This document shows, in pieces, positions 58-63,564 of a stretch of DNA of 64,000 nt (position 1 is its first letter; each line of letters opens with the position of its first letter). The notes under the pieces are model-generated. The model saw only the letters and a list, made by a program, of their open reading frames with translations. It was not told the origin of the DNA and did not search any database. The translations under genes were made by a program, and so were the position numbers. This stretch comes from Macrostomum lignano (taxonomy: Eukaryota), in NCBI GenBank assembly GCA_002269645.1, contig NIVC01000189.1, forward strand, positions 62,001 to 126,000, given 5' to 3'.

Positions 58-3000
58 ACAACAGATGAGCAGCAGACAGTGCTTGAAGCAACGCAGTTAT
101 TTAGTCGAATTCCGGAGCTTCAGTGGATCCAGGAGGTTCCTCCGGCGGAGCGGACGAGACTGGCAGCGGCTGTGTGCGACAGCCTGCAGAGCTTCAGGAC
201 TGCGGCTTCTGACATCTCGGTAAGGCGGTTTGTTAACACACCATCGAATAAATTAATGTATGGTAAATGAGCTCAAGCAATTCTCATTCAACATTCGACT
301 TGCCTTAAGGCCGAAGATCGAGAAAAGCTTCAGGAAGCAGCGCGAGTGTTGAGATACGTTCCCGAGCTTCAGTGGCTGAGCAGTCTGTCACAGTCTGAGC
401 AGGTTGAGCTGGCTGCTGCTCTGGGCAACAAGATGCAGCAGCTGATCAAGGATCCACAGCTCAGGGCTAAGTATTCGGCAGCAGCTGCAGCACGAGAGGT
501 GAGCTTTTATATTCTAGAGTAATTGCCTCGGCTTAGGGTTTTACGTAAGCGCATGTAAACTTTGTTCATACTTGTATCACGAGAAAACCATTTTTATCAG
601 ACTTCGTTGCTTTAAAGCACTGTAAAAATTACTACTTCAGGCAGAAGAATCTGAGCTTCTTCAGCAAGCTCTTCAGACTATCGGCGAGTCGTCTCAGCTC
701 CAGTGGCTCGACGACCTGAGCCAGTTCGACAAGCAGCTGCTGGCAGAGGCCATGTGCGACTCGCTGCAGCAGCTCAGAGTCAGCCAGCAGCTGGCGGCCG
801 CACATCCGAAGGTGGTGCTTGAGGCGACGCAGCTTCTGAGCAGAGTTCCGGAGCTGCAGTGGATCCAGGAGGTTCCTCAGGCAGATCGAGCGCGACTAGC
901 AGCGACTGTGTGCGACAGCCTGCAGAGCTTCAGGACTGCGGCTTTTGAGACCTGGGTAAATAAGTTAATTGCATGACACAGTATTTAATAAATTGGAGGA
1001 TGAGAAGAAGTAAGAATGAGTACGTTCCGTTTACAGGCTGAAGATCGGGAGAAGCTCCAGAAAGCAACGCGAGTACTGAGTGACGTTCCCGAACTTCAGT
1101 GGCTGAGGAGTCTGTCTCAGTCTGAGCAGGTCGAGCTGACTACTGCTCTGAGCAGCAAGATGCAGCAGCTGATCGAGGATCCACAGCTCAGGGCAAAATA
1201 TTCAGCAGCAGCTGCAGCTCGAGGGGTGAGCTTTCATATTTTTGAGTAAAGGTTCTGGTTGCTGTTTTACGCCGCGTGCAACCTACGCTCGTACAAGGAC
1301 CACAATACAGATCATATATGTGGCATTTTTAATAAAGTAACGGTAGAAATCGAAAAGTGTTTCAATATGGATATTTTAGGCCGAAGAAGCTGAGCTGCTT
1401 CAGCAAGCGCTTCAGATTATCGGCGAGTCGTCTCAGCTGCAGTGGCTCAACGACCTGAGCCAGTCCGACAAGCAGCTGCTGGCTGAAGCCATGTGCGACT
1501 CGCTGCAGCAGCTCAGAGCCAGCCAGCAGCTGGCGGCTGCACATCCGGAGGTGGCGCTCGAGGCGACGCAGCTTCTGAGCACAGTTCCGGAGCTGCAGTG
1601 GATGAGCAGTCTATCTCAGGCTGAGCAGGTCGAGCTGACCGTTGCTCTGAGCCACAAGATAAAACAGCTGATCAAGGATCCACAGCTCAGGGCCAAGTAT
1701 TCGGCAGCAGCTGCAGCACGAGGGGTGAGCTTTTATACTCTTAAGTAACGATTCTTGCAGCATGTAACATGTAACTTACGTTTGTAAAAGAATGACGTGA
1801 TCATATTTTTTGAGGCAGCAAGTTTAGGAAATTCTTCTACTATTAATATTTCAGACCGAAGAATCTGAGCTGCTTCAGCAAGCTCTTCAGACTATCGGCG
1901 AGTCGTCTCAGCTGCAGTGGCTCGACGACCTGAGCCAGTCCGACAAGCAGCTGCTGGCAGAAGCCATGTGCGACTCGCTGCAGCAGCTCAGAGCCAGCCA
2001 GCAGCTGGCGGCCGCACATCCGGAGGTGGTGCTCGAGGCGACGCAGCTTCTGAGCAGAGTTCCGGAGCTGCAGTGGATCCAAGAGGTTCCTCCGGAAGAG
2101 CGATCGAGACTGGCAGCGGCTGTGTGCGACAGCCTGCAGAGCTTCAGGACTGCAGCTTCTGAGATCTTGGTAACTAAGTCGGTTCCATGTAGATTACATA
2201 AAATTGAAAAGAAATAGGTGACGAGAAGAACTATGAATAAATATGTTCCATTTACAGGCTGAAGATCGAGAGAAGCTCCAGGAAGCAGCGCAAGTTCTGT
2301 GCGACATTCCAGAGCTTCAGTGGCTGAGCAGTCTGTCTCAGTCTGAGCAGGTCGAGCTGACTGCTGCTCTGAGCAACAAGATGCAGCAGCTGATCAAGGA
2401 TCCGCAGCTCAGGGCCAAGTATTCGGCAGCAGCTGCGAATCGACATGTAGGGGTTCAAATTCTTTTCTGATGCAGGCTTATCGTAGCATAGAAACAAATG
2501 CCATTTGGGGTGTACGAGTGGGCTGTGTGAAAACCCTTCTAAAATATCCAAAGGCGTTACAGGCCGCCAACACAGAAATGCTTCAGCGAGCGCTTCAGAG
2601 TCTTGGCGAGTCGTCTCAGCTGCAGTGGCTTCATGACCTGAGCCAGTCCGACAAGCAGCTGCTGGCAGAGGCCATGTGCGACTCGCTGCAGCAGCTCAGA
2701 GCCAGCCAGAAGATCGCAGCTGCACACCCAGATGTGGCGTTCGAGGCGACGCAGATTCTGAGCAGAGTTCCGGAGCTGCAGTGGATCCAGGAGGTTCCTT
2801 TGGCAGATCGAGCGAGACTGGCAGCGGTTTCTGAGATCTCGGTAAGGCGGTTTGTTAACACACCATCGAATACATTAGAATGCGGTAAATGAGCTCAAGC
2901 AATGCTCGTTTGTAAATTCGACACGCTTTAAGGCCGAAGATCGGGAGAAGCTCCAGGAAGCATCCAGAGTGTTAAGCGAAGTTCCTGAGCTGCAGTGGCT

Positions 3001-6000
3001 GAAGAGTCTGTCTCAGTCTGAGCAGGTCGATCTGATTGCTGCTTTTAGCAAAAAGATGCAGCAGCTGATCAAGGATCCACAGCTCAGAGCTAAGTATTCG
3101 GCAGCAGCTGCAGCACGAGGGGTGAGCTTTTATATTCTTGAGCAAAGATTCTGGTTACTGGTTTAGGCCGTATGCACTTTCCTACAATCACCACGATCGA
3201 GATCAAAGCAGTTTTATAGAACAACCAAAAAAAATTTCTAACATTACTACTTCAGACCGAAGAATCTGAGCTTCTTCAGCAAGCTCTTCAGACTATCGGC
3301 GAGTCGTCTCAGCTGCAGTGGCTCAACGACCTGAGCCAGTCCGACAAGCAGCTGCTGGCAGAAGCCATGTGCGACTCGCTGCAGCAGCTCAGAGCCAGCC
3401 AGCAGCTGGCGGCTGCACATCCGGAGGTGGTGCTCGAGGCGACGCAGCTTCTGAGCAGAGTTCCGGAGCTGCAGTGGATCCAGGAGGTTCCTCAGGCAGA
3501 GCGGGCGCGACTGGCAGCCGCTGTCTGCGACAGCCTTCAGAGCTTCAGGACTGCGGCTTCTGAGATCTCGGTAACTAAGTCGGTTCCATGTAGATAACAT
3601 AAAATTGAAAAGAAATAGGTGACGAGAAGAACTAAGAATAAATATGGTCCATTTACAGGCTGAAGATCGAGAGAAGCTCCAGGAAGCAGCGCAAGTTCTG
3701 TGCGACATTCCAGAGCTTCTGTGGCTGAGAAGTCTGTCTCAGGCTGAGCAGGTCGAGCTGGCTGCTGCTTTGAGCAACAAAATGCAGCAGCTGATCAAGG
3801 ATCCACAGCTCAGGGCCAAGTATTCGGCAGCAGCTGCAGCTCGAGGGGTGAGCTCTTATATTCTTGAGTAAATGCTTTGTCCGAGAGTTTTACCTAAGTG
3901 TCTGTAAACTTTGTTTATGCATGTATCACACGATAAAACCTTTTTTTTGGATAACGTTTGCTTAAAAAGCACTGATAAAATTCATGTTTCAGGCTGGAGA
4001 CTCTGAGATTCTTCAGCGAGCGCTTCAGAGTCTCGGCGAGTCGTCTCAGCTGCAGTGGCTTAACGACCTGAGCCAGTCCGACAAGCAGCTGCTGGCAGAA
4101 GCCATGTGCGACTCGTTGCAGCAGCTCAGAGCCAGCCAGCAGCTGGCGGCCGCACATCCGGAGGTGGTGCTCGAGGCGACGCAGCTTCTGAGCACAGTTC
4201 CGGAGCTGCAGTGGATCCAGGAGGTTCCTCAGGCAGATCAAGCGACACTGGCAGCGGCTGTGTGCGAAAGCCTGCAGAGCTTCAGGACTGCGGCTTCTGA
4301 GATCTCGGTAAGGCAGTTCTGTTAAAAAGGGATCAAATAGAATAAGTGAATCTAGTTTCAAGAAATATAGTAGCATGCCTAGTCGATATTGAATCAAACA
4401 TTCGATGCTTCTGCAGGCTGAAGATCAGGAAAAACTTCAGGAAGCAGCCAGAGTGTTGGGCGAAGTTCCTGAGCTTCAGTGGCTGAGGAGTCTGTCTCAG
4501 TCTGAGCAGGTCGAGCTGACTGCTGCTCTGAGCAACAAGATGCAGCAGCTGATCAAGGATCCGCAGCTCAGGGCCAAGTATTCGGCAGCAGCTGCAGCAA
4601 GAAGGGTGAGCTTTTTTATCCTTGAGTGAAAGTTCTGGTCGCTATTTTACACTGCATGTAACTTACGCTCGTACAAGGACCACAATACAGATCATACATG
4701 TAGCATTTTTAATAAAGTAACTGTAGAACACGAAAAGTGCTTCAATATGGATATTTTAGGCCGAAGAATCTGAGCTTCTTCAGCAAGCTCTTCAGACTAT
4801 CGGCGAGTCGTCTCAGCTGCAGTGGCTCAACGACCTGAGCCAGTTCGACAAGCAGCTGCTGGCTGAAGCCATGTGCGACTCGCTGCAGCAGCTCAGAGCC
4901 AGCCAGCAGCTGGCGGCCGCACATCCGGAGGTGGTGCTCGAGGCGACGCAGCTTCTGAGCAGAGTTCCGGAACTGCAGTGGATCCAGGAGGTTCCTCAGG
5001 CAGAGCGGGCGCGACTGGCAGCAGCTGTGTGCGACAGCCTGCAGAGCTATGGAAGCGGGAGTGGTTTGGTAGGTTTATGCATGGCGGCAAACAATAGAAA
5101 AGATGAGATTTTAAAAAACTTTTTTGTTATATTTTTTCAGTCGCCTCACTTTGAAACTTTTATCGAAGCTACGGAGCAGCTGAGCAAAGTTCCTGAGCTG
5201 CGTTGGATTCAGGAGGTGCCCCAGGCTGACAGGGCTCGGCTTGCTGCTGCAGTCTGCGACAGTGTGAAGAAATTTCAAACTGGTGACGCAACTCACCAAG
5301 GACTTGAACTTGCGGTTCGTTTGATTTTGTTTTTTACACTGCCTACGTGTCTGCAGATGGATTGAGTGGCTCTATAGCAGTACGCCTGACTCGTGTGTTG
5401 TAAGCTGCTTTACACCCTATCTTAGTGTGCGTGTGTCCAGGAGTTAGCGAAATGGGAATCACTGCAAGGACCACTGACAGGACGTAAAACTCAAGGATCG
5501 TGTAATTTTTTTGGCCAATTTCTTAGAAAAATACACCGTCAGATATAAGAAAAGACATTTTTATTACATAATCAATTATTTAATTGATCTGGGGCAGTAC
5601 AGTGAAGATTACCGTTATTTCATTTTAGCATAATGCACAGCTGTGTAGTGAAAGTTTCATAATTATATTTGGGCTTATGAAATAAAAATAAAACAGTAAA
5701 AACAATTAAAAACATTTAGAAGAATGATCCCCAGATCAAATGCAATAAATGATTTTTCTTTCTCTGCAGTGTATTTTTTCCAGGAAACTAGCCTCCAAAA
5801 ATTACACGGTCTTGGAGCTTTACGTCCTGTTATACTACAGTGGTCCTTGCATGACTGCTGTGGGTGGGTTGTCTTCTTGATTTACGGCATCTGCTATTTA
5901 AGACACCTGAATCTGCTTGTTTTTGACTTTACGGTTTGAATTTCCCAATACTGCAGCCAACCGATATGCAAGTCGTGTTCGACGCCACGCAGCTGCTAAG

Positions 6001-6500
6001 TTCGGTCCCAAAGCTTCACTGGATTCAGGAGTTGCCTCCAGACGAGCGGTCAGGGCTGGCGGCTGCTGTGTACGGCAGCTTGCAGAGCATGAAGACCAGC
6101 GTAAAGTTTGGTACTGGTGAAGATGATGATGCAACGTTGTTCGTAAGTCTACTTGTTAGATGACAATTTGCATCGAATCATGTAAGTGAAGGCAACCAAC
6201 GCGCATACATTACAGACGCGCGACTCACGTACTGTTGTTGAAGCGACCGAACTTTTGAGCAGAGTGCCCGAGCTTCGCTGGATTCAGGAGTTGCCTGAGA
6301 CAGACGGGCGCGCTCTTGTCGCGGCCGCAATCACCCAGCTGCAACGAAGTACAGCAAAACAATCATCTCCTGAACAAAAGTTTTCGCCTACACCAGCAGA
6401 AGCAGAATCTTTGCAGGCAACGTCAAGACCAAACACTCGACTCGTTGTTAACGCGAGAAGTTTCTACATCGATCCGTGCTGGAAGTATCGAACAGTTGGG
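58..6500 (+). CDS. Tandem exon array encoding ~24 copies of a ~55-aa helical repeat (EATQLLSRVPELQWIQEVP / VPELQWLRSLSQSEQVEL)
   Basis: Exons, all phase 0: 58-219, 310-498, 641-955, 1037-1225, 1380-1724, 1855-2169, 2258-2446, 2563-2841, 2933-3121, 3256-3570, 3659-3847, 3993-4307, 4417-4605, 4760-5068, 5141-5314, 5957-6142, 6216-6500. 189-nt and 315-nt exon types alternate, with AT-rich introns between them. Confidence 0.9.
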
Positions 6501-9500
6501 GTAAGTGTCTCAGGTACTTCATGAGTGCATAGATGGCTTGCCGCAAAGTTCAATTTTGGTTTTGGCCGAGTTAACTAGAGGATGCACATCATTGAAGCGC
6601 CCTTGAAATTGGGGTAGTCGTATGTTGGTAATTGGTATCCCTTCGTGTGATAAATCAATGAAACAATGAAGACTTGACCCTAGCCCTAGCCTAATCCCTA
6701 GTACTAGCCCTAGCCAAAACCCTAGCCCAAACCCTAGCCCTAGCCCTAGCCAAAACCATAGCCGTAGCCGTAGCTCTAGCCCAGGTCCTAGCCCTAGCCC
6801 TAACCCTTTAACGCTAACCTTAATTGAAACAAGTGACATTGACAGCGGATATTCAACTTTTTAGACATTAAAACACTCAGCTCAATTCTTTACAGCCTCG
6901 AATTGCGATGGCATCTTCTACTGGAAGACCAGCAGACTCTGCAACAACCGCCGCAGCCGCCGCCCATTCATCAACAGAAGACGAAACTGATGAGTTACAG
7001 TTTTCTGGACAATCCAAAGCCGAAGAAAAGTCATTAGAAGTTGTTCAAAACCGAGACGAAGTTGATCAAGCGACTGCAGTTAAATTCAGCTACAATTCAC
7101 CAAGTACAGAAGCAGAGTTCACAGTCCCGCAACAGACAGATCCGCCAAAGGTATGCTCACTGATGCATCAAATCGTTGAGCATTCAAGACAGTTAATACC
7201 ACAGATACTAAAATAACTAGATGGGCCACTCAGGCACATATACTTAGTAAAGCAGCTTTCTACTTTCAGTTTAGTAGCAAAGAAGAATACATAAGCTATT
7301 TTATAAAAATAAAGGCAGCTTAAATGACTTTGATAAGTTTAGAACCCCAAGCTTACAGGCGTAAACAACTTGCTAATTCGTTCAGCAATAATGTACATTA
7401 GCCAGTCCACTGAAATGTACATGGCCGCTTTAGGCTGGAATTCCGAGAAAGGCAATAAAATTTGGATGGCGGGGCAGGGGGGGGGGTAATTTGGAAAGGC
7501 GCGGTTGGAGGGTTTAAGCTGGGGGGTAAGAGCCAATAAATTGAGCTTTAAAAATACATTAAAATGCTTCTGTTTAACTTACTACTGAACTGAAAGTAGT
7601 TTACACGCAAATGTGCTGACTAGCCCATCTAGTTATTTAACTTATTTTAAATATCTGTGGTGGTTAAGACAGCCAAATTTAATAAAAATTTTAATCAAGA
7701 ATCTATTTCAATCACCTTTATCGTTTCAGTGAAAACAAAAAAACACCCCCTTTGTCATTTTTGCACATTTTCTTCTATTTACTTTTCGGTTTAAGATCCT
7801 GGTGTTGGTTAATTTGTGTCGTTTTTTCAATCGATGTTTTCAGTTTTAGGCAAAATTAATGAACAAAGATTCGCGCTGATTGTAGGACGAGCGAGTAGAA
7901 ATGCAGAACCTGAAAATTCAACTCGAGAAAGAAATCGATGAACTTCGTCGAAGCAAAACCCTGGACGACAATTATCGCAGCAAAGTGGACGAGCTGAACT
8001 CCACGAACGAGCGGCTGCAGATGCAGAATCAGCAAGCTGAGGAGGCGATGGAGCAGATGGCGCAGAATGAGGCTGCTGTTAATGCCGCTGAGAAGGTGAG
8101 GCAGCTTTGACTCAGCTTTTTGAGTTTGTTGCGTTTCGGAGAAATAGATAATGTACTACTTTTTACCTACCACGAAGTACTTCGTTAGATGATTGCAGAT
8201 TAAGTTACATGTTGGATCAGAGAGTGTCACAGGTTAGATAATTACAGATTGTTACCTGTTGGATTAGAGAGTGTCACAGGTTAGATAATTGCAGATTGTT
8301 ACCTGTTGGATCAGAGAGTGTCACAGGTTAGATAATTGCAGATTGTTACCTGTTGGATTAGAGAGTGTCACAGGTTAGATAATTGCAGATTGTTACCTGT
8401 TGGATCAGAGAGTGTCACCGGTTAGATAATTGCAGATTGTTACCTGTTGGATTAGAGAGTGTCACAGGTTAGATAATTGCAGATTGTTACCTGTTGGATC
8501 AGAGAGTGTCACCGGTTAGATAATTGCAGATTGTTACCTGTTGGATCAGAGAGTGTCACAGGTTAGATAATCGCAGATTGTTACCTGTTGGATCAGAGAG
8601 TGTCACCGGTTAGATAATTGCAGATTGTTACCTGTTGGATCAGAGAGTGTCACAGGTTAGATAATTACAGATTGTTACCTGTTGGATCAGAGAGTGTCAC
8701 AGGTTAGATAATTGCAGATTGTTACCTGTTGGTTCAGAGTGTCACAGGTTAGATAATTACAGAGTGTTACCTTTTGGATTAGAGAGTGTCACAGGTTAGA
8801 TAATTACAGATTGTTACCTGTTGGATTAGAGAGTGTCACAGGTTAGATAATTACAGATTGTTACCTGTTGGATTAGAGAGTGTCACAGGTTAGATAATTA
8901 CAGATTGTTACCTGTTGGATTAGAGAGTGTCACAGGTTAGATAATTACAGATTGTTACCTGTTGGATCAGAGAGTGTGACAGGTTAGTTAATTACAGATT
9001 GTTACCTGTTGGATCAGAGAGTGTCACAGGTTAGATAATTGCAGATTGTTACCTGTTGGATCAGAGAGTGTCACAGGTTAGATAATTGCAGATTGTTACC
9101 TGTTGGATTAGAGAGTGTCACAGGTTAGATAATTACAGATTGTTACCTGTTGGATCAGAGAGTGTCACAGGTTAGATAATTACAGATTGTTACCTGTTGG
9201 ATTAGAGAGTGTCACAGGTTAGATAATTACAGATTGTTACCTGTTGGATCAGAGAGTGTCACAGGCTAGATAATTACAGATTGTTACCTGTTGGATCAGA
9301 GAGAGTCACCGGTTAGATAATTACAGATTGTTACCTGTTGGATCAGAGAGTGTCACAGGTTAGATAATTACAGATTGTTACCTGTTGGATCAGAGAGTGT
9401 CACAGGTTAGATAATTACAGATTGTTACCTGTTGGATCAGAGAGAGTCACCGGTTAGATAATTACAGATTGTTACCTGTTGGATTAGAGAGAGTCACAGG

Positions 9501-12500
9501 TTAGATAATTACAGATTGTTACCTGTTGGATCAGAGAGTGTCACAGGTTAGATAATTACAGATTGTTACCTGTTGGATCAGAGAGTGTCACAGGTTAGAT
9601 AATTACAGATTGTTACCTGTTGATCAGAGAGTGTCACAGGTTAGATAATTACAGATTGTTACCTGTTGGATCAGAGAGTGTCACAGGTTAGATAATTACA
9701 GATTGTTACCTGTTGGATCAGAGAGTGTCACAGGTTAGATAATTACAGATTGTTACCTTTTGGATCAGAGAGTGTCACAGGTTAGATAATTGCAGATTGT
9801 TACCTGTTGGATCAGAGAGTGTCACAGGTTAGATAATTACAGATTGTTACCTGTTGGATCAGAGAGTGTCACAGGTTAGATAATTACAGATTGTTACTTG
9901 TTGGATCAGAGAGTGTCACAGGTTAGATAATTACAGATTGTTACCTGTTGGATCAGAGAGTGTCACAGGTTAGATAATTACAGATTGTTACCTGTTGGAT
10001 TAGAGAGTGTCACAGGTTAGATAATTACAGATTGTTACTTGTTGGATCAGAGAGTGTCACAGGTTAGATAATTACAGATTGTTACCCGTTGGATTAGAGA
10101 GTGTCACAGGTTAGATAATTACAGATTGTTACCTGTTGGATTAGAGAGTGTCACAGGTTAGATAATTACAGATTGTTACTTGTTGAATCAGAGAGTGTCA
10201 CAGGTTAGATAATTACAGATTGTTACCTGTTGGATCAGAGAGTGTCACAGGTTAGATAATTACAGATTGTTACTTGTTGAATCAGAGAGTGTCACAGGTT
10301 AGATAATTACAGATTGTTACCTGTTGGATTAGAGAGTGTCACAGGTTAGATAATTACAGATTGTTACTTGTTGGATCAGAGAGTGTCACAGGTTAGATAA
10401 TTACAGATTGTTACCTGTTGGATCAGAGAGTGTCACAGGTTAGATAATTACAGATTGTTACCTGTTGGATCAGAGAGTGTCACAGGTTAGATAATTACAG
10501 ATTGTTACCTGTTGGATTAGAGAGTGTCACAGGTTAGATAATTACAGATTGTTACCTGTTGGATCAGAGAGTGTCACAGGTTAGATAATTGCAGATTGTT
10601 ACCTGTTGGATCAGAGAGTGTCACAGGTTAGATAATTGCAGATTGTTACCTGTTGGATTAGAGAGTGTCACAGGTTAGATAATTACAGATTGTTACCTGT
10701 TGGATCAGAGAGTGTCACAGGTTAGATAATTACAGATTGTTACCTGCTGGATCAGAGAGTGTCACAGGTTAGATAATTACAGATTGTTACCTGTTGGATC
10801 AGAGAGAGTCACAGGTTAGATAATTACAGATTGTTACCTGTTGGTTCAGAGAGTGTCACAGGTTAGATAATTGCAGATTGTTACCTGTTGGATCAGAGAG
10901 TGTCACCGGTTAGATAATTACAGATTGTTACCTGTTGGATCAGAGAGTGTCACAGGTTAGATAATTGCAGATTGTTACCTGTTGGATCAGAGAGTGTCAC
11001 AGGTTAGATAATTGCAGATTGTTACCTGTTGGATCAGAGAGTGTCACAGGTTAGATAATTACAGATTGTTACCTGTTGGATCAGAGAGTGTCACAGGTTA
11101 GATAATTACAGATTGTTACCTGTTGGATCAGAGAGTGTCACAGGTTAGATAATTGCAGATTGTTACCTGTTGGTTCAGAGTGTCACAGGTTAGATAATTA
11201 CAGATGTTACCTTTGGATTAGAGAGTGTCACAGGTTAGATAATTACAGATTGTTACCTGTTGGATTAGAGAGTGTCACAGGTTAGATAATTACAGATTGT
11301 TACCTGTTGGATTAGAGAGTGTCACAGGTTAGATAATTACAGATTGTTACCTGTTGGATCAGAGAGTGTCACAGTTTAGATAATTGCAGATTGTTACCTG
11401 TTGGATCAGAGAGTGTCACAGGTTAGATAATTACAGATTGTTACCTGTTGGATCAGAGAGTGTCACAGGTTAGATAATTACAGATTGTTACCTGTTGGAT
11501 CAGAGAGTGTCACAGGTTAGATAATTGCAGATTGTTACCTGTTGGATCAGAGAGTGTCACAGGTTAGATAATTACAGATTGTTACCTGTTGGATCAGAGA
11601 GTGTCACAGGTTAGATAATTACAGATTGTTACCTGTTGGATCAGAGAGAGTCACAGGTTAGATAATTACAGATTGTTACCTGTTGGATCAGAGAGAGTCA
11701 CAGGTTAGATAATTACAGATTGTTACCTGTTGGATTAGAGAGTGTCACAGGTTAGATAATTACAGATTGTTACCTGTTGGATCAGAGAGTGTCACCGGTT
11801 AAATAATATTGTTACTGTTGGATTAGAGAGAGTGACTTGTTAAATCCTGGTAGATAATCACAGGTTAGATAATTGCAGATTGTTACCTGTTGGATTAGAG
11901 AGAGTCACAGGTTAGATAATTACAGATTGTTACCTTTTGGATTAGAGAGTCTCAGGTTAGATAATTACAGATTGTTACCTGTTGGATCAGAGAGTGTCAC
12001 AGGTTAGATAATTACAGATTGTTACCTGTTGGATCAGAGAGTGTCACAGGTTAGATAATTACAGATTGTTACCTGTTGGATTAGAGAGTGTCACAGGTTA
12101 GATAATTACAGATTGTTACCTGTTGGATCAGAGAGTGTCACAGGTTAGTTAATTACAGATTGTTACCTGCTGGATCAGAGAGTGTCACAGGTTAGATAAT
12201 TACAGATTGTTACCTGTTGGATCAGAGAGAGTCACAGGTTAGATAATTACAGATTGTTACCTGTTGGATTAGAGAGTGTCACAGGTTAGATAATTGCAGA
12301 TTGTTACCTGTTGGATCAGAGAGTGTCACCGGTTAGATAATTACAGATTGTTACCTGTTGGATCAGAGAGTGTCACAGGTTAGATAATTGCAGATTGTTA
12401 CCTGTTGGATCAGAGAGTGTCACCGGTTAGATAATTACAGATTGTTACCTGTTGGATTAGAGAGTGTCACAGGTTAGATAATTGCAGATTGTTACCTGTT

Positions 12501-14503
12501 GGATCAGAGAGTGTCACAGGTTAGATAATTACAGATTGTTACCTGTTGGATCAGAGAGTGTCACAGGTTAGATAATTACAGATTGTTACCTGTTGGTTCA
12601 GAGTGTCACAGGTTAGATAATTACAGATTGTTACCTGTTGGATCAGAGAGTGTCACAGGTTAGATAATTGCAGATTGTTACCTGTTGGATCAGAGAGTGT
12701 CACAGGTTAGTTAATTACAGATTGTTACCTGTTGGATCAGAGAGTGTCACAGGTTAGATAATTGCAGATTGTTGCCTGTTGGATCAGAGAGTGTCACAGG
12801 TTAGATAATTACAGATTGTTACCTGTTGGATCAGAGAGTGTCACAGGCTAGATAATTACAGATTGTTACCTGTTGGATTAGAGAGTGTCACAGGTTAGAT
12901 AATTACAGATTGTTACCTGTTGGATCAGAGAGTGTCACAGGTTAGATAATTACAGATTGTTACCTGTTGGATTAGAGAGTGTCACAGGTTAGATAATTAC
13001 AGATTGTTACCTGTTGGATCAGAGAGTGTCACAGTTAGATAATTGCAGATTGTTACCTGTTGGATCAGAGAGTGTCACAGGTTAGATAATTACAGATTGT
13101 TACCTGTTGGATCAGAGAGTGTCACAGGTTAGATAATTACAGATTGTTACCTGTTGGATCAGAGAGTGTCACAGGTTAGATAATTGCAGATTGTTACCTG
13201 TTGGATCAGAGAGTGTCACAGGTTAGATAATTACAGATTGTTACCTGTTGGATCAGAGAGTGTCACAGGTTAGATAATTACAGATTGTTACCTGTTGGAT
13301 CAGAGAGAGTCACAGGTTAGATAATTACAGATTGTTACCTGTTGGATCAGAGAGAGTCACAGGTTAGATAATTACAGATTGTTACCTGTTGGATTAGAGA
13401 GTGTCACAGGTTAGATAATTACAGATTGTTACCTGTTGGATCAGAGAGTGTCACCGGTTAAATAATATTGTTACTGTTGGATTAGAGAGAGTGACTTGTT
13501 AAATCCTGGTAGATAATATCTGTAAAATAACCTTCAATCCACACAAAAGTTCTGCAAACATTTTAATTTCCTCAACTCTAAATTCAGCTTCTTATCAGCT
13601 CAAAAAATCTGCTCAAGTCATCTCAGGTACAAACGTAATCTACCCACGCCATACGGGCATATACAAGTCATGTATAATTTTGCGAATAACCTATTACTTG
13701 TGCCATTCAGTACTCTATTGATATATAGAATAGGTGTTCATTATATGCGTAGTATGTTTCATGATATATTACACTCGGTGCTGCATTGATGTCGTTCTAT
13801 CTATGGATGATGGACTAATCTGATCGTTATATTCCGGCTTGAGTCCCGCATATCTTATTTTTTGTATAATATTTTGTTAATTTCTTTAACAACAAAACTT
13901 GCATCACTTCAAAACCTCAGGCTGAAAATGAGTTTCTCAATATTGAGAAGCGTCACAACGAGTTGCTGCAGGTGAAATTATTGAGAAAAATAATTGAGTT
14001 TCTCTCATTTTTGTTTTAAATTGAGGTTTTGGATTTTTCCGGCTTTTTATGTGCCACATTTTAACAAAATAAAGCTTGAATTAATACTTGAAATGCCTAA
14101 AACTCAAAATTCAAGGCTGCCAACGAGAGATTCGCCAAAGAGAACAAGAAACTCGAAGAGGAACTCGAAGAGACTCGAAAGCGACTTAACGAGGCCGAGG
14201 CGGAATTAGAATTCAAAACGAACGAATGCAGCAGTCTCAAGGTAGGTGCTAATACGTAAATAAACACAAAAATTATAGTCCGTTTTGGAAGTGAATCTTA
14301 TTAAAGGGTATATTTAGTCAAATATCGATCCGTACGAAATTATTTTTATACACGAAATACACAGCATTACTAAAACTAAGATTAACGCGTATTATTACAT
14401 TATTGGTTTGTTGACTACTCAAGTAGTACTCAAAGTAGTTCTCATATACTAGTCAAATATTACTTAGAGTAACTTAAATTAGGGCTCAAATAGTATTCAA
14501 ATC

Positions 14504-14570
<67 letters not shown>

Positions 14571-17500
14571 AAGTAAGTCAATAAGTAAGTAAGCTAGTAA
14601 GTATGTAAAGTGAAGTAGTACTCAAAGTAGTACTGAAATAGTACTAAAGTAGTGCCTAAGTATTTTCTAGAATCATCTTGTTATCTTATTCGACGTTTTA
14701 TTCAATATTCAGAAATTGTCCTAAAGTTATAGTTATTATATAGAAACACATAATAAGAATTGAAACTCCAGGGAAATATCTTGCCTGCTTCTCAAGACGA
14801 TTGAAAAAGCGATAGGATTGTCAAATCAGTCTACTTGAGTAGTCTACGAGTATATTTCATTCTCTTATTAAATAATCATTTCCTGCTCTTTGGTTGTTTG
14901 AAAACGCATATATTAACACGCCACTATAATCTGATCTACGATTAATCCAATATTTTATGTCCGTATTATGCTACTCAAAGTAACACCCGAAGAATTTCTC
15001 TCGATCTGCCAGGAAAATCACGACAAATTGACCGATGCGGTTAGCAAGGGCCAGCAGAATTTGGAGAAGGAGATGGTCTATTGCGACATCAAGCAGAAAG
15101 AGATTGACGAGTTCAAGGTGCCATTGAAAAGGATTTCCTCGCATTTCTTGAAGTCAAGCCAGGAAAAAAAACAAAGAAATCAAATTTCAAAACTTGGCAT
15201 ATAGTTACTGAAATTTTCTGTCTGTATGTTTTAGAAAAATGTTGGCAAGCTGACCGCCGAGAGAGACAAAAACAAAGAGCTGCTGGAGCGAGTGCGCACC
15301 GACCTCGAGGATAAGACCAACGAACTGGATGAAGTCCAAGTAATTTCCAGTTTAAACAGAACTAAAATTATGCTTTAAGAAAAGTATATCAAGTAAAAAC
15401 GAGTTTTAGTTAGTCGTACGTTCGTAGAGTTAAATATGGGCACTCATATCTCATGGTGGGCTCCCTTGTTTCTTGGTGGGCGCCCTTGTTTCTTGGTGGG
15501 CGCCCTTGTTTCTTGGTGGCTCCCTTGTTTCTTGGTGGGCGCCCTTGTTTCTTGGTGGCTCCCTTGTTTCTTGGTGGGCGCCCTTGTTTCTTGGTGGGCT
15601 CCCTTGTTTCTTGGTGGGCTCCCTTGTTTCTTGGTGAGCGCCCTTGTTTCTTGGTGAGCGCCCCTGTCTCTTAGTGGGCGTCCCTGTCTCTTGGTGGGCG
15701 CCCCTGTCTCTTGGTGGGCTCCCTTGTTTCTTGGTGGGCTCCCTTGTTTCTTGGTGGGCTCCCTTGTTTCTTGGTGGGCGCCCTTGTTTCTTGGTGGGCG
15801 CCCTTGTTTCTTGGTGGCTCCCTTGTTTCTTGGTGGGCGCCCTTGTTTCTTGGTGGGCTCCCTTGTTTCTTGGTGGGCGCCCTTGTTTCTTGGTGGGCTC
15901 CCTTGTTTCTTGGTGGGCTCCCTTGTTTCTTGGTGAGCGCCCTTGTTTCTTGGTGAGCGCCCCTGTCTCTTGATGGGCGCCCCTGTCTCTTAGTGGGCGT
16001 CCCTGTCTCTTGGTGGGCGCCCCTGTCTCTTGGTGGGCTCCCTTGTTTCTTGGTGGGCTCCCTTGTTTCTTGGTGGGCTCCCTTGTTTCTTGGTGGGCTC
16101 CCTTGTTTCTTGGTGGGCTCCCTTGTTTCTTGGTGGGCTCCCTTGTTTCTTGGTGGGCTCCCTTGTTTCTTGGTGGGCTCCCTTGTTTCTTGGTGGGCTC
16201 CCTTGTTTCTTGGTGGGCTCCCTTGTTTCTTGGTGGGCTCCCTTGTTTCTTGGTGGGCTCCCTTGTTTCTTGGTGAGCGCCCCTGTCTCTTGGTAGGTGC
16301 CCTTGTCTTTTGGTGGGCGCCCCTGTCTCTTGGTGGGCGACCCTGTCTTTTGGTGGGCGCCCCTGTCTCTTGGTGGGCGTCCCTGTCTCTTGGTGGGCGC
16401 CCCTGTCTCTTAGTGGGCGCCCCTGTCTCTTAGTGAGCGCCCCTGTCTCTTGGTTGGCGCCCTTACCAATGCTGGTCATCTACAATTGTTTCTACATTGT
16501 GGATGCCTAATCAAAGAAGTAGCAAAAGTTGAGCTCGCATCAATAGTCGAGCTTAGTAGCTTCTTTAATTCAATCCTTGTGGGGGCGATTGTGGGAGGGC
16601 CAAGATCCCCTGTGCCTACGCCACTGAAGACTAGCACTATATCCTAGCTTCAATAGCTGTGAACTATGTCTGACGAGACCATAACAAATATTTTCACTAT
16701 CATTATCTTAGAAAAAACTGGACCAACTAAAAACTGACAAAGACCAGTTGGAAAAGAATCACAAAGACTTGGAATTGAAACTTGAAGCCGAGCACAAAGA
16801 GAAAGAGTCGCTGACAGAGGCCAACAACACCATGACGTCGGCGCTGGACCAGAGCAACAAAAGCTTGGAAGAGAAGGATGCCGAGCTTGAACGAAAAGAT
16901 GAACAGTTGAATGAAGCAAAAGTAAGATTCTGTTTTTTGTTAAAAGCTTGTTCCACATGACGTCATCAACAATCGAAACCACAGCTCGGAGAGGAAAATC
17001 TTCAAACTAACAGGAGGAAGCTTCGAAGTACAAGCAAGAGAATGAGGAACTGGAAAGAAAGGCGATCACTGCCGAGAAAGAGGTTGAAAAGAAGGACGAC
17101 GAACTGAAGAGTTTGCAGGTTGTAAAATTCCTCAACTTCCTCGCTGCTTAATTTCTTGTTTTTGTTTTTCCTTTTGTTAACTCCGAAGGTCGCCGCCGTT
17201 GGTTCGTCGGAGGGAGTTGGAATGGAGTTTTCTTCAGCCAACAATCAAACTTCGAAGAATGATTATTAATGAGACAAACGTTTTCCACTCTTCTAGACAA
17301 CCGTGGCAGATCTGGAAAGAGACAAGGAAGACCTGACTAAGCAGGTGCAAGAGTTGGATGAGTCGTTGAAAAACAAAGATCAGGAAATGAACACCTACAA
17401 GGTGCGGTTATTTCGTTCGTCGAATTCCTCCAATCGGATTTTTCTTAATCGGGATTTTCATCGGATTTAATTGTGGGAGACAGTATTTTCGTGTCTGTTC

Positions 17501-20500
17501 ATCCAATTTTCAGAAAGCACGATCGTCTTTTTCCTCCGTTTTTTTATTTTCAAAAACTTTTTGTTTTACTTGATCAATTTTTTGACGGCTTTACCCGGAT
17601 GTCATGCTTTGATTTGCGTTGGTGATTCGGATACTTATTTTCAATTTCGACAATTGCTAACTGGTGGAGCAGACTGGCTTTGGTAAAGAAACACCTGCTT
17701 GAACTCCACCGGCAGAGCAACAACGAGAAACTCTCGGCCAGCGTGGAGCAACAGGGCAAAAGCTTGGAGAAGAAATCGGCCGAAGTTGAAGCCAAGCAGC
17801 GCGAGATCGAGTCGCTCAAAGCCGAGAAGACCAAGCTCAACCAGGATCGCCGCGAGGAGGAGGCCCGACTCCAGGAGAAGGTCAAGGAGCAGTACAAGGA
17901 GACTCTGGACGCTAAGCGGGAACGCGACGATTTGAATCGAACCAAAGCTTCGCTTGAGAAGCAAATCGAAAAACAAAAACAGAAAATTGAGTCCTTGCAG
18001 AAGGACATTGGTCAGCTGAAGGTGAGACGCTGCAGTCAAACAAGGCTAAGGCAATATAATGAGAAAAAGAGATTATCTTGAACTAAAATAAATTCATGTT
18101 TAATTCTCCACCTGCATAGGAGAACACCGAAAATTTGACTTCATCATTGGAGACTGCGGAAAAGACGCAGGAAGACACGAACAATCATTGCAAAGAGCTG
18201 GAAGAGGAGCTCAATAAACTCAAGGTCTGAATTGAGCAATAAAACTCGTAGCAATTAGGACTTTTATCTCAATGGTGGCCTGTTGTGCCTTTTGGTAATG
18301 GATTTGAAGCTTTCCTATAGTTTTATAGGGTTTTTGGCACCTGTTGACTTCACTCCAAATCCTGCTACTCATTTTATTCATTTTATTCCTACGGTAAATT
18401 CCGCATACGAGATAACAGAATTACTTGTGTACTCTGCTTACCGAAGGAAAAAGTCTGTAAATTTTATCGATTCGAGCACTTTGCTCACAGACAAACTAAT
18501 CCTAATTTTTCAACTCTCAGGATGAGAAAAACCGACTGGAGAACGAGCGAGAGGAGCTCAGCCGCAAACTGGCCGACACAGAGGCCGACAAAGACCGGCT
18601 CCAGCAGGAAAGCGAGCAATTGAAGAAGTCAACAGAAGCGGCCGAGAAAGACAAAGAAGCATTGCAAAGAGAGTTCGACGATTATCGAAAAGAAGCCGAG
18701 GCGGCTTCCGATGAGCTCAAAAAGTCCAACGAGTCCGTGACAAAGAGTTTGGACAAGGCGATGAAGAATCTGGAGACTAGGAATCAAGAGTTTCAGGTGA
18801 GTTGCATAAATTACACTTGGACTCAGAGCATTCCTCCTGTGTCCAAAACTGGGACGCTTAAATACGAGCTAGGTAGACCAAGATTCTCAATTCTCTTCAA
18901 AGTGTGAATGCCAGAGAATGCAGTAAATATTTGCAGATTCACATGCCCGACCTCCTCTCGCTGAGTAGAGTAGCTGATATGCGCGTTTGGCACACCTCTT
19001 GCCTGAAAATTATATTTGTCTTTTTAGCATAAGACCAATATTTGCACTAACTATCTGAGAAGTTTATTTCCACCTTAAATACGACTGACTTAGGCCCTAC
19101 TTAACGCGTATGCAAGGCAGGCAGACTTCAGCAGAGAAAGATTAAGCTCACTTTCTCTTTCTATAGAAGTTGGAATACAAGCTACTTTATCAGATCAGAA
19201 GGTAGACAGTGTTAAAGCTGTTCGGAGTCTTATTCCATCGTTTGCTTATTCTCAGCTTTGCTTTCTCGGACTTTAAGGCCGGACGTCTCTTCATTTCCCC
19301 TGCTTTCTGTTTCTCACCCAAACTTCCTCTCTCCCTCAACCCCCTCTATCCCTCGATCCCCTCTCCTTCAACCCCCTCTGCCTCAACCCCCTCTCTTCCC
19401 CAACCCCCTCTCTTCCTCAACCACTTCTCTAACTCAACCCCCTCCTTCCCTCAACCCCCTCTCTCCCTCAACCCCCTCCTTCCCTCAACCCCCTCTCTCT
19501 CTCAACCCCCTCCTTCCCTCAACCCCCTCCTTCCCTCAACCCCCTCTTTCCCTCAACCCCCTCCTTCCCTCAACCCCCTCTCTCCCTCAACCCCCTCTCT
19601 CCCTCAACCCCCTCCTTCCCTCAACCCCCTCTCTCCCTCAACCCCCTCCTTCCCTCAACCCCCTCTCTCCCTCAACCCCCTCCTTCCCTCAACCCCCTCT
19701 CTCCCTCAACCCCTTTTCCTACACGCCCCTTTCCCTCAACCCCTCTCCCTCAACCGCCTCTATCCCTCTCCCTCTCTCTCCCCTCCCCCTCCCTGCTCGC
19801 CCTTCTACCTCCCCCTCCCTCTCTCTCGCTCCCTCAATCCTCTTTCTCCCTCAACCCCTCTCCCTCAGCTATCGTTCGTTCACCCACTCCAAGCTAACTA
19901 CGAGTAACTTCCCCCGTTCTTCCTTCCCCGCAGGCCAAAGCCCGTGAGGCGCAGTCCAGCAGAGAGGCCAAAGAAGCCCTGGCCCTGGAGAAGGACCGCC
20001 TCGATCACTCGCTTCGCAAAGCCAACACTGAATTGGAGAAACGAACTCAGGACCTAGCCAGAGCAAAATCGGACAAGGAACGAATCGAGGCCGCCCAGTA
20101 CGAATCTGAACGTCGAGCCAAGGACGCCGAGCACAGACTGGCGGAGCGAACTCGTGACCTTGCAGATCAGCGCTCGAAATGTGAGCAGCTGCAGGCTGAG
20201 AAAGCCGAATTGGAGGCCGGAGCTCGGGAACAGCGGGCTCGAACTCAGGAGCTGCAGAACGAAGTGTCATCGCTTAAACGAGACCGAGACAGACTGCAGC
20301 GAGAGCTTGAGGACACAAGACGTTCAGCTGACGGACTGGAGACTAAGAAGATGGACATTGAAAAGGAGCTGGATTCGGAGAAGGTAGGTTTACCTTGTCA
20401 GGAAGGTAGGTTTACCTTGTCAGGAATGTAGTTTTACCCTTTACCCTGTCAGGAATGTAGGTAGGTTTACCCTGTCAGGAATGTAGGTTCACCCTGTCAG

Positions 20501-23500
20501 GAATGTAGGTTTACCCTGTCAGGAATGTAGGTTTACCCTGTCAGGAATGTAGGTTCATCCTGTCAGGAATGTAGGTTTACCCTGTCAGGAATGTAGGTTC
20601 ATCCTGCCAGGAATGTAGGTTTACCCTGTCAGGAATGTAGGTTCATCCTGTCAGGAATGTAGGTTTACCCTGTCAGGAATGTAGGTTTACCCTGTCAGGA
20701 ATGTAGGTTTACCCTGTCAGGAATGTAGGTTTACCCTGTCAGGAATGTAGGTTCATCCTGTCAGGAATGTAGGTTTACCCTGTCAGGAATGTAGGTTCAT
20801 CCTGTCAGGAATGTAGGTTTACCCTGTCAGGAATGTAGGTTTACCCTGTCAGGAATGTAGGTTCACCCTGTCAGGAATGTAGGTTTACCCTGTCAGGAAT
20901 GTAGGTTTACCCTGTCAGGAATGTAGGTTCATCCTGTCAGGGATGTAGGTTTACCCTGTCAGGAATGTAGGTTCATCCTGTCAGGAATGTAGGTTTACCC
21001 TGTCAGGAATGTAGGTTTACCCTGTCAGGAATGTAGGTTCACCCTGTCAGGAATGTAGGTTCATCCTGTCAGGAATGTAGGTTTACCCTTTACCCTGTCA
21101 GGAATGTAGGTAGGTTTATCCTGTCAGGAATGTAGGTTCATCCTGTCAGGAATGTAGGTTTACCCTGTCAGGAATGTAGGTTTACCCTTTACCCTGTCAG
21201 GAATGTAGGTAGGTTTACCCTGTCAGGAATGTAGGTTTACCCTGTCAGGAATGTAGGTTTACCCTGTCAGGAATGTAGGTTTACCTTGTCAGGAATGTAG
21301 GTTTACCCTGTCAGGAATGTAGGTTTACCCTGTCAGGAATGTAGGTTTACCTTGTCAGGAATGTAGGTTCATCCTGCCAGGAATGTAGGTTTACCCTGTC
21401 AGGAATGTAGGTTCATCCTGTCAGGAATGTAGGTTTACCCTGTCAGGAATGTAGGTTTACCTTGTCAGGAATGTAGGTTTACCCTGTCAGGAATGTACGT
21501 TGTGTGGGGTTGACGTCAGAAATATAGGATACATTCTGTCACTTACTTTACGTTAGTACGTATTTTTAAACAGAAAAACTCCGGAAAATTGCGTCGCGAC
21601 GCGGAGAGTCTGCAGGACCGAATCCGAGAGCTGGAGGCCCGCTTGGACGGCAAAGACCGGGAGATCGCCGACGCCAAGGTAACGGGAAAAACCGGCCCAA
21701 TGCCAATGCAAATTACAGGGAGACTACTAGCGGTCATAAAGCACGTCAGGATTTCAAGAATGGGTAGTACGGACAATCAATTGAGCCTTAAAATTGTAAC
21801 GTCGAAAATTGAACTGCAACTTCATTTCCAGTTACTGTTGTTTTTTGACAAGTCATAAAATATCTTGACAGAGACGTCCCTGATATATTGATAAAGAAAC
21901 CTAGTTTTAGTGGCGTCACTAAAATCAATGACGCAGCCTAGTTTTAATGACGTCACTAGAATAGATGACGTCGCCTAGTTTTAGTGACGTCACTAATATC
22001 GATGCGACGCAATCTAATGTCAGTGACGTCACTAATATTGATGCCGAAACTTAGTTTCAGTGACGTCACTAGTATCAATGACGAAACCTATGTTCAGTGA
22101 CGTCACTAGTATCAATGACGAAACCTAGTTTCACTGATGTCACTAGTATCAATGACGAAACCTAGTTTCAGTGACGTACCTGGATCGATGACGCAACCTA
22201 GTGTCAGGGACGTCTTTAATGTCATATGAAAACTTTGTCAAAAAGCGTAAAGATAGCAATGACGTCATTCATTTGCCACGTCACAATCGATAACTCAATC
22301 GGAGCCTACATCGCCTACTATCTATTTTCCCTATCTCAAAGGCCGCCCAAGAAGAGGCCCAGAGGGAGCGCAAGAAAATGCAGCGCGATTTGGACGATCA
22401 ACAGAAATCGGCCGAGTCGTTGAAGAACACCAACGAACGGCTGGAAGAGGAGCTGCAAGAGGTCAGCAACAAGTTGGACCGGGAGATCGGCAAGTCGGAC
22501 GGTTCTGGTGGAGATCTTACCGATCAGCTCAAGGTATTCGAGATAGAGTTTTGCGGCCTTAGCAGTGGGACTTTAACTGAGGAATGTAGGGCTGTCTTAA
22601 CTGAGGAATGTAGGGCTGTCTTAACTGAGGAATGTAGGGCTGTCTTAACTGAGGAATGTAGGGCTGTCTTAACTGAGGAATGTAGGGCTGTCTTAACTGA
22701 GGAATGTAGGGCTGTCTTAACTGAGGAATGTAGGGCTGACTTAACTCAGGAATGTAGGGCTGTCTTAACTGAGGAATGTAGGGCTGACTTAACTGAGGAA
22801 TGTAGGGCTGTCTTAACTGAGGAATGTAGGGCTGACTTAACTGAGGAATGTAGGGCTGACTTAACTCAGGAATGTAGGGCTGACTTAACTGAGGAATGTA
22901 GGGCTGACTTAACTGAGGAATGTAGGGCTGACTTAACTGAGGAATGTAGGGCTGACTTAACTGAGGAATGTAGGGCTGACTTAACTGAGGAATGTAGGGC
23001 TGACTTAACTCAGGAATGTAGGGCTGACTTAACTGAGGAATGTAGGGCTGACTTAACTGAGGAATGTAGGGCTGACTTAACTGAGGAATGTAGGGCTGAC
23101 TTAACTGAGGAATGTAGGGCTGACTTAACTGAGGAATGTAGGGCTGACTTAACTCAGGAATGTAGGGCTGACTTAACTGAGGAATGTAGGGCTGACTTAA
23201 CTGAGGAATGTAGGGCTGACTTAACTGAGGAATGTAGGGCTGACTTAACTGAGGAATGTAGGGCTGACTTAACTGAGGAATGTAGGGCTGTCTTTACTGA
23301 GGAATGTAGGGCTGTCTTAACTGAGGAATGTAGGGCTGTCTTAACTGAGGAATGTAGGGCTGTCTTAACTGAGGAATGTAGGGCTGACTTAACTGAGGAA
23401 TGTAGGGCTGTCTTGACTGAGGAATGTAGGGCTGTCTTAACCATGAGGAATGTAGGGCTGTCTCAACTGAGGAATGTAGGACTGTCTTAACTGATGAATG

Positions 23501-26366: not shown

Positions 26367-26372
26367 AATAAA
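26367..26372 (+). terminator. Candidate polyadenylation signal AATAAA
   Basis: AATAAA about 90 nt after the stop codon of the ninein-like gene. Confidence 0.5.
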
Positions 26373-26989: not shown

Positions 26990-27525
26990 ATGGGGTGGTG
27001 GATTAAATGGGGTGGTGGATTAAACGGGGTGGTGGATTAAATGAAGTGATGGATTAAATGGGTGGTTGGTTTAATGGGGTGGTGGGTTTAATGGGGTGGT
27101 GGGTTCAATGGGGTGGTGGGTTTAATGGGGTGGTGGGTTCAATGGGGTGGTGGGTTTAATGGGGTGGTGGGTTTAATGGGGTGGTGGGTTCAATGGGGTG
27201 GTGGGTTTAATGGGGTGGTGGGTTTAATGGGGTGTTGGGTTCAATGGGGTGGTGGGTTTAATGGGGTGGTGGGTTCAATGGGGTGGTGGGTTCAATGGGG
27301 TGGTGGGTTCAATGGGGTGGTGGATTCAATGGGGTGGTGGGTTCAATGGGGTGGTGGGTTCAATGGGGTGGTGGATTCAATGGGGTGGTGGATTCAATGG
27401 GATGGTGGGTTTATTGGGGTGGCGGAATTAGTGGGGTGGTGGGTTTAATTGGCTGGTGGGTTTATTAGGGTGGTGGATTCAACGAGGTGGTGGATTCAAT
27501 GAGGTGGTGGATTCAGTGGGGTGGC
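26990..27525. repeat. 17-bp G-rich minisatellite (AATGGGGTGGTGGGTTY)n
   Basis: Direct reading; lies between the 3' ends of two convergent genes. Confidence 0.92.

Positions 27526-50727: not shown

Positions 50728-51142
<415 letters not shown>

Positions 51143-55447: not shown

Positions 55448-55608
<161 letters not shown>

Positions 55609-63470: not shown

Positions 63471-63564
<94 letters not shown>

Follow-up and report, generated by a model that had tools for sequence, protein, structure and literature searches.

The DNA analysed here is a 64 000-nucleotide stretch of the Macrostomum lignano genome (contig NIVC01000189.1), referred to as the window and numbered from its own first letter. 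It opens within an array of short exons that encode a tandem repeat (58-6500) and continues, on the same strand, into a gene for a long coiled coil with a ninein-type C-terminus (6896-26277). M. lignano is a transgenic, regenerating model with a genome noted for its many repeats and lineage-specific genes, and it is reported to retain centrosomes.

Seventeen array exons with GT-AG boundaries were rebuilt by script from 58-6500 (+). All are phase 0 at both ends and have lengths divisible by 3, and together they comprise 4134 nt, or 1378 codons, with 0 stops and 0 frameshifts. An earlier note on this DNA had described 17 symmetric exons free of stops and frameshifts, and that description holds almost to the base, with 17 of 17 exons being phase 0 at both ends. 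The alternation of 189-nt and 315-nt exons that it reported is also real, but has three exceptions, namely a 345-nt hybrid, a 279-nt exon with a 36-nt deletion and a 309-nt exon with a changed tail. The window begins in the intron that precedes exon 1, and GT-AG sites are kept at every boundary of the array. The exons, which encode repeat units of three types (A, B and C), are as follows.

58-219 (+): array exon 1, 162 nt; one C-type repeat, AG/GT boundaries, phase 0
310-498 (+): array exon 2, 189 nt; A-type, one repeat, 79 bits with the unit profile
641-955 (+): array exon 3, 315 nt; BC-type, two repeats
1037-1225 (+): array exon 4, 189 nt; A-type
1380-1724 (+): array exon 5, 345 nt; hybrid, a B unit and a second unit that is C-type in its head and A-type in its tail
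1855-2169 (+): array exon 6, 315 nt; BC-type
2258-2446 (+): array exon 7, 189 nt; A-type
2563-2841 (+): array exon 8, 279 nt; BC-type lacking 36 nt, in frame
2933-3121 (+): array exon 9, 189 nt; A-type
3256-3570 (+): array exon 10, 315 nt; BC-type
3659-3847 (+): array exon 11, 189 nt; A-type
3993-4307 (+): array exon 12, 315 nt; BC-type
4417-4605 (+): array exon 13, 189 nt; A-type
4760-5068 (+): array exon 14, 309 nt; BC-type with an altered tail, the final cassette copy
5141-5314 (+): array exon 15, 174 nt; one C-like repeat, diverged, 81 bits with the unit profile
5957-6142 (+): array exon 16, 186 nt; one C-like repeat, diverged
6216-6500 (+): array exon 17, 285 nt; the last repeat and a tail of ~45 aa rich in S, T, P and Q

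A profile of the repeat unit, run against the six-frame translation of the whole window, found exactly 24 copies at 64-6365 (+), scoring 57-84 bits each, and none elsewhere, so that the earlier estimate of about 24 repeats was correct. Units are ~50-63 aa long and centred on a tryptophan (PELQW), and only four positions (A, L, W and L) are invariant across all types. The A unit of 63 aa is encoded by one 189-nt exon, the B unit (~55 aa) and the C unit (~50 aa) are fused within one 315-nt exon, and the three types share 25-35 % mutual identity. Reading from the left, the unit order is C; A B C; A B (C/A hybrid); B C; A B C'; A B C; A B C; A B C; C C C. The core of the array is thus a three-unit, two-exon cassette (189 + 315 nt; ~0.73 kb with introns) present in approximately seven copies, flanked on the 3' side by three more diverged single-exon C-like units. 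The last units (5141-6500) had been noted before as more diverged, and share 44-62 % identity with the core C-type unit.

Self-BLAST revealed offsets of ~0.7, 1.4, 2.1, 2.7 and 3.35 kb, and the longest blocks pair 79-1629 with 3430-5009 (83 %) and 1583-2436 with 2980-3837 (88.6 % over 863 bp). As these blocks span several cassettes, amplification of multi-cassette blocks must also have occurred. The array combines same-phase symmetric exons, homologous introns and a higher-order period, which are the features of a tandem exon-duplication array, and the genomic mechanism, amplification of a cassette of symmetric exons, is already well known. The history of the array has two stages: single-exon C-like units diverged into types A, B and C, after which unequal recombination amplified the cassette of an A exon and a B+C exon about seven-fold, in part through blocks of 1.4-1.6 kb. 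Since every exon is phase 0, every duplication, deletion or exon fusion stayed in frame. Two exons carry traces of such events. Exon 5, to judge from its translation (…EATQLLSTVPELQW/MSSLSQAEQVELTVALSHK…), is a recombinant of a C unit with the following A exon at PELQW, the intron between them having been deleted in frame, and no separate A exon follows it. In exon 8, alignment shows that the 36-nt in-frame deletion is bounded by two GCGGCT microhomologies.

The first exon in the window is not the start of the gene. Two public UniRef models from M. lignano, A0A1I8I9H7 (P0001) and A0A1I8JLS9 (P0002), contain the 54 aa of exon 1 exactly, and both extend upstream of it by a further pair of diverged C-like repeats (56 and 61 bits) and by ~300 aa that are predicted to be helical and coiled-coil-like and that include no start codon. 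Because of this upstream part, the start of the gene must lie outside the window, with the array in its interior; the proposal that the array had been grafted onto an N-terminus is therefore not upheld. A current Pfam scan does not bear out the names automatically assigned to the two models (PLU-1 and DUF4201 domain-containing).

Beyond the array, 16 exons could be chained between 6896 and 26277, though the chain is an approximation that may lack some small exons. They are listed here together with the sequence that separates them from exon 17.

6501-6895 (+): intron (395 nt) or intergenic spacer; hexamer array, ATTAAA at 6867 and acceptor TTCTTTACAG
6896-7150 (+): linker exon, 255 nt; starts and ends in phase 0, acidic low-complexity, first in-frame ATG at 6908
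7886-25501 (+): 14 inferred coiled-coil exons; all start and end in phase 0, apart from the phase-1 end of the last
7886-8095, 14116-14241, 15235-15339, 16712-16921, 17014-17121 (+): coiled-coil exons 1-5
17297-17401, 17716-18021, 18521-18796, 19934-20383, 21574-21678 (+): coiled-coil exons 6-10
22342-22533, 23845-23949, 24688-24837, 25171-25501 (+): coiled-coil exons 11-14
25967-26277 (+): terminal coding exon; ninein/NINL C-terminal motif …LLKELYAENAQLMKALQVTEQRQKVAE…, stop TGA at 26275-26277

The phase-0 linker exon is as it had been described, and an AATAAA lies at 26367, 90 nt past the stop codon. Of the 16 exons, 14 are phase 0 at both ends, which bears on the earlier suggestion that the symmetry of the array exons is a basis for exon skipping: this symmetry extends through the gene and is a condition that lets exon duplication survive, not evidence for exon skipping. 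Within 6501-6895, positions 6678-6807 hold ~22 copies of degenerate CCCTAG/CCCTAA-like hexamers with a 36-bp higher-order period, which look like a telomere repeat on the opposite strand. Minisatellites, each different, fill nearly every intron of the ninein-like gene, and those in several of the larger introns are long (8184-13466, 15454-16464, 19326-19862, 20440-21501 and 22573-23747). One with a 47-bp unit and ~111 copies at 95-96 % identity fills 5.3 kb of a single intron, and the others have units of 20, 17, 22 and 24 bp in ~30-50 copies each, the 22- and 24-bp units having a common GGAATGTAGG core.

The coding sequence specifies 1110 aa if read from the ATG at 6908 and 1114 aa if read from the acceptor at 6896, and consists of an acidic low-complexity stretch of ~80 aa followed by ~1000 aa of coiled coil. 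When the protein was searched against 5.8 billion sequences, 11 of the 11 matches with E <= 1e-5 were ninein or ninein-like proteins (E = 2e-8), and the ninein-specific Pfam models PF27645 and PF27974 are listed for the database matches. The last 138 aa share 35 % identity with residues 1651-1788 of the 1791 residues of NINL (pairwise E = 2e-19), and the C-terminal motif is nearly identical (LLKELYAENAQLMKALQVTEQRQK compared to LLKDLYVENSQLMKALQVTEQRQK of NIN/NINL). On these comparisons the downstream gene ends in a genuine ninein/NINL C-terminus, and the assignment of its coiled coil to the ninein family is borne out at that end. The likeness to the family that includes NIN, NINL and Drosophila Bsg25D lies in the extreme C-terminal motif (NIN/NINL) and, for ninein and NINL, in the long coiled coil, here of >1000 aa. 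However, the N-terminal region of ninein is visible neither in the window nor in the upstream fragment. As had been stated before, vertebrate ninein and NINL carry EF-hands and lack the repeat: Pfam finds EF-hands in NINL (P0004), and the repeat unit is absent from 11 vertebrate ninein/NINL proteins. If there is one gene, the array of 24+2 units is an insertion of ~1400 aa without counterpart in the described members of the family. The word-indexed homology database holds no M. lignano protein that covers the ninein-like part or the 6500/6896 junction, and the supplementary tables of published M. lignano work that were searched contain no NIN, NINL or ninein entries.

Our preferred reading, to which we assign a probability of approximately 0.55, is that the region represents the central part of a large M. 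lignano protein-coding gene in which the array is internal and is likely joined to the ninein C-terminus. The join would be made by cis-splicing of exon 17 from 6500 to 6896, into the coiled coil that ends in ninein, and the features of the two splice sites make this step probable. Exon 17 ends at a consensus donor (G/GTAAGT) exactly in phase 0, and if the donor at 6501 is unused the frame meets a stop after 7 codons, at 6522-6524. The nearest good acceptor after it, TTTACAG at 6896, leads into an exon in phase 0, and as all downstream exons up to 25171 are phase 0, any choice of acceptor among them would be in frame. The GC content at third codon positions (GC3) is 0.63 in the array and 0.64 in the downstream coding sequence, and the tail of exon 17 and the exon at 6896-7150 read like one continuous disordered linker. 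Furthermore, acceptors are predominantly trans-spliced to a spliced leader (SL) when they have no upstream cis donor (work cited in PMC8629364), so the presence of a cis donor at 6501 disfavours SL trans-splicing at 6896.

A number of observations weigh against this junction, and most of them would fit two genes on the same strand, which we regard as a tenable, if less than even, possibility. In that case, the array gene would read through the GT at 6501 to the stop at 6522-6524 and be polyadenylated before 6896, and the ninein-like gene would be independent, starting at the ATG at 6908 from its own promoter or by operon-type SL trans-splicing at 6896. The joining of 6500 to 6896 rests on splice-site and phase logic. 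The ATG at 6908 lies 12 nt past the acceptor, is the first ATG of the open frame, and has G at both -3 and +4. The linker exon has a GC3 of 0.32, unlike the 0.63-0.64 of both its neighbours, and the gap of 371 nt from the stop at 6522-6524 to 6896 falls inside the limit of <1 kb applied to operon neighbours in this species (PMC8629364). In M. lignano, 30-39 % of genes undergo SL trans-splicing and ~15 % lie in operons, conserved genes are enriched among those that are trans-spliced, and the SL ends in an ATG that would be in frame if joined at 6896 (PMC5730564, PMC8629364). The part of P0002 upstream of the array has no detectable similarity to ninein (phmmer, 11 family members), and a Pfam scan detected no EF-hand in any window exon or in P0001 or P0002, the true N-terminus lying outside the window. 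A BLASTP alignment of P0002 to residues 512-571 of ninein (E = 0.026) was rejected as coiled-coil noise, as phmmer gave no consistent or positive-scoring match across the 11 members.

Other points in favour of two genes each meet a counter-argument. There is an ATTAAA at 6867, but it stands just 23 nt before the AG of the acceptor, so that hardly any space would separate a cleavage site from that acceptor. The acceptor TTACAG fits the motif [T/C]TNCAG that is enriched at M. lignano SL acceptors (PMC8629364), but the same motif is common to the cis acceptors of the array and does not discriminate. If there are two genes, a phase-0 GTAAGT 7 codons before the putative stop would be a coincidence, with a chance of ~1 % for the hexamer within ~24 nt, and a ninein-family protein without an N-terminal domain would be unusual, though short isoforms of NOCA-1 exist. 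Searches of the window found no SL RNA sequence, and Rfam and tRNA scans of it returned nothing. By analogy with Caenorhabditis elegans noca-1 (PMC4608005), both patterns could coexist as alternative isoforms.

A second alternative, which we consider improbable, is that the number and order of the cassettes are an assembly artefact, the true locus having fewer or rearranged cassettes and the count being inflated by mis-assembled alleles or homeologues of a hidden polyploid. A passage in PMC10468722 does describe M. lignano as a hidden polyploid, and P0001 and P0002, which derive from an older assembly, are chimeric: exon 1 is joined to an exon-9-like exon, there are mid-exon jumps between cassettes, and exon 13 is out of frame. 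The first 54 of the 63 aa of exon 9 are found exactly in P0001 and with one substitution in P0002, and residues 393-452 of P0001 match 4447-4626 of the window at 98 %, including intron read-through after exon 13. However, every cassette in the window is distinct, with 4-14 % divergence in exons and 3-30 % in introns, and cassettes carry features of their own, such as the hybrid exon and the 36-nt deletion. The simpler explanation for P0001 and P0002, which show intron read-through and loss of frame as well, is that the array was collapsed in the older, short-read-era assembly, and this is probably the source of their irregularities. A shorter allele or homeologue without a 2.7-kb block might explain equally well why exon 1 is joined to an exon-9-like exon.

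Comparison of the cassette copies indicates that the array is coding in the frame given above. Identity between copies is 86-93 % for A exons and 91-96 % for BC exons, while that between introns is mostly 70-80 % (two classes average 76 % and 79 %, and a few pairs reach 88-97 %). Nonsynonymous (dN) and synonymous (dS) divergence, estimated by the Nei-Gojobori method, was 0.08 and 0.35 for A exons (dN/dS 0.24) and 0.055 and 0.13 for BC exons (dN/dS 0.43). The ratio of the uncorrected proportions (pN/pS) was lowest in the annotated frame among all six, at 0.28 (A) and 0.45 (BC), compared to 0.43 and 0.69 in the codon-aligned antisense frame and 0.75-2.6 in the remaining four. Because exons are more alike than introns, dN/dS is 0.24-0.43 and pN/pS is lowest in the annotated frame, the array is, on the evidence of these substitution patterns, real coding sequence whose copies are kept under purifying selection. 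That the array is instead a non-coding or pseudogenised satellite-like duplication, its open frames a by-product of composition and recent copying, is very improbable, as the openness of other frames of the GC-rich exons for ~100 codons and the setting in a very repeat-rich genome with minisatellites in the neighbouring introns have to be set against 1378 codons without a stop although copies diverge by 4-14 %, indels that are all in frame, exons kept well above introns with GT-AG conserved at each boundary, and a dN/dS of 0.24-0.43 with its minimum in the annotated frame only.

The same comparisons do not support the earlier view that the array is actively expanding. There are no near-identical copies, the best long blocks share 83-89 % identity, maximum exon identity is 96 %, dS is 0.13-0.35, and the youngest detectable duplicate blocks are ~11 % different. 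The 2.7-fold difference in dS between the A and BC exons of the same cassette suggests that gene conversion may have acted on the BC exons. Taken together, the hybrid exon, the deletion and the possible gene conversion represent turnover, not current growth.

The repeat itself was not recognised by any database, as the earlier note had claimed from inspection alone. Neither the cassette nor the diverged tail gave more than sub-threshold noise against Pfam at E <= 1, no Pfam family (spectrin, ARM/HEAT, TPR and EF-hand among them) being similar at that level, and the possibility that the repeat belongs to a well-known Pfam family was thus examined and gave no match. The best match of the repeat profile to PDB sequences had E = 1.8. 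A HMMER profile scan of 1.84 billion cluster representatives returned P0001 as the sole genuine match; three matches outside Macrostomum were rejected, being sums of many 13-18-aa matches in unrelated low-complexity or repeat proteins. When the spliced array was used as query in a word-indexed search of 5.8 billion proteins, the M. lignano models P0001 and P0002 were the only two matches. The best Foldseek match of a repeat model to the PDB had E = 7.7, a null that is to be expected because the query was a low-confidence AlphaFold model. Pfam, the PDB sequences, Foldseek and the search of 1.84 billion representatives therefore yielded nothing like the repeat outside M. lignano, and it is an orphan all-helical repeat that merits a family entry.

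Two AlphaFold2 runs were made, one on 231 aa without an alignment (predicted local distance difference test, pLDDT, 46.7; predicted template modelling score, pTM, 0.25) and one on the BC exon (105 aa), for which 17 rows of aligned units were supplied (pLDDT 60.9, pTM 0.30). At this low confidence the models are usable for secondary structure alone and not for the tertiary fold. Thus, of the modelling that had been proposed as a check, the helical secondary structure was obtained, and a confident fold or a PDB match was not. Each unit is predicted to consist of a helix of ~13 aa, a short helix of ~7 aa that contains the invariant Trp (PELQW) and a helix of ~25 aa, the last of which is predicted to run almost unbroken into the first helix of the next unit.

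If the preferred single-gene reading is correct, exon 17 would be cis-spliced via a disordered linker into a coiled coil of ~1100 aa that ends in the ninein/NINL C-terminal domain, and the product would be ~2900 aa or more, with the array as an internal module of a ninein-type microtubule-anchoring protein. The array would then form a long helical-repeat segment (at least 26 units, ~1400 aa) with a coiled-coil region on either side, in a scaffold that is probably dimeric. At microtubule-organising sites, centrosomal or not, it may serve as a rod or spacer of helical repeats or as a docking platform with many binding surfaces, but this is doubtful, as the models have pLDDT values of 47 and 61 and pTM values of 0.25 and 0.30, and a role as rod or platform is speculation. 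A rod or spacer would set the reach of the protein, a platform would present the PELQW surface many times to one partner, and a link between the array and the ninein C-terminus would place this role in the anchoring of microtubule minus ends, centrosomal or non-centrosomal. An internal start, at the ATG at 6908 or by SL trans-splicing at 6896, may in addition produce a short isoform that is ninein-like and lacks the array.

Nebulin super-repeats and spectrin-repeat rods are known exon-cassette super-repeat proteins. They likewise consist of tandem helical modules in symmetric exons, likewise have a higher-order cassette (here three units in two exons) that is amplified as a block, and likewise gain and lose modules in frame via unequal recombination. 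Such proteins act as rulers, rods or scaffolds, a role that for the M. lignano array is inferred. Unlike spectrin and its kind, the M. lignano array is built of a unit of ~50-63 aa with the Trp motif PELQW. A different parallel is provided by C. elegans NOCA-1, also the product of a large locus, the isoforms of which have different N-terminal parts and a common C-terminal coiled coil that is homologous to ninein (PMC4608005). It offers a precedent for the coexistence of long, array-containing isoforms and short ones starting at ATG 6908, but differs in having no repeat array.

The remainder of the window holds further repeats, remnants of mobile elements and a set of orphan reading frames. At least seven further minisatellite arrays (26990-36265) form a chain across the 10 kb past the stop codon of the ninein-like gene, and those at 28591-30466, 31119-31660 and 33570-34053 have a GGATCTGGGAGG core in common, which suggests a related satellite family. 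Remnants of the N-terminus of a mariner/Tc1-type transposase (41308-41765, -) are spread over two overlapping frames, match HTH_48 (E = 7.7e-6) and HTH_Tnp_Tc3_2 (E = 2.5e-4) and are probably a decayed copy. A fragment resembling a long terminal repeat (LTR) retrotransposon (44526-46433, -) includes a gag open reading frame (ORF), a zinc-knuckle-like CX2CX4HX4C and an aspartyl protease ORF (E = 4e-8); its gag match to Retrotrans_gag is weak and sub-threshold (E = 1.9e-4, 22.0 bits compared to a cut-off of 24.1 bits), and no reverse transcriptase or integrase ORF was seen for it in the ORF listing. The N-terminal part of the protease ORF gave a near-threshold match to the cold-shock domain (PF00313, 26.0 bits compared to a cut-off of 27), an unusual feature in an element of this kind. 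Two tandem sets of paralogous ORFs (48877-50167 and 53559-55024, -) have no Pfam match, examples being …ECYRKGECRLVKIKKSD… and …KVYKRPLDSASGGSS… compared to …KVYKRQLDKLCGSSS…. A (CTGT)n microsatellite comes after each set (50728-51142 and 55429-55600), and the two sets together look like a duplicated orphan gene with a period of ~5 kb. The window ends in ~1.1 kb of CT-rich low-complexity sequence (62876-63991) with strong negative GC and AT skew and long spurious ORFs rich in S, L and P.

The most far-reaching interpretation would be that a new Trp-centred three-helix domain family, confined to Macrostomum or the macrostomids, has been amplified inside a ninein orthologue to give a tunable rod or platform of ~1400 aa, with a length that varies by allele, by homeologue and by exon skipping, and we think this unlikely. 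The array is a lineage-specific orphan repeat module in or beside a ninein-type gene, and is less remarkable than was first proposed, because it is internal and not demonstrably expanding, the symmetry of its exons is gene-wide, the fusion is unproven and the genome is repeat-rich. If there are two genes, the array would be an orphan repeat protein in a repeat-rich genome and of local interest only. If, on the other hand, the array is part of a ninein orthologue, a conserved microtubule-anchoring scaffold would have gained a large lineage-specific module by exon-cassette amplification, and the two-tier history of the array, an old divergence into three types followed by amplification of the cassette, would also illustrate how repeat proteins grow in frame.

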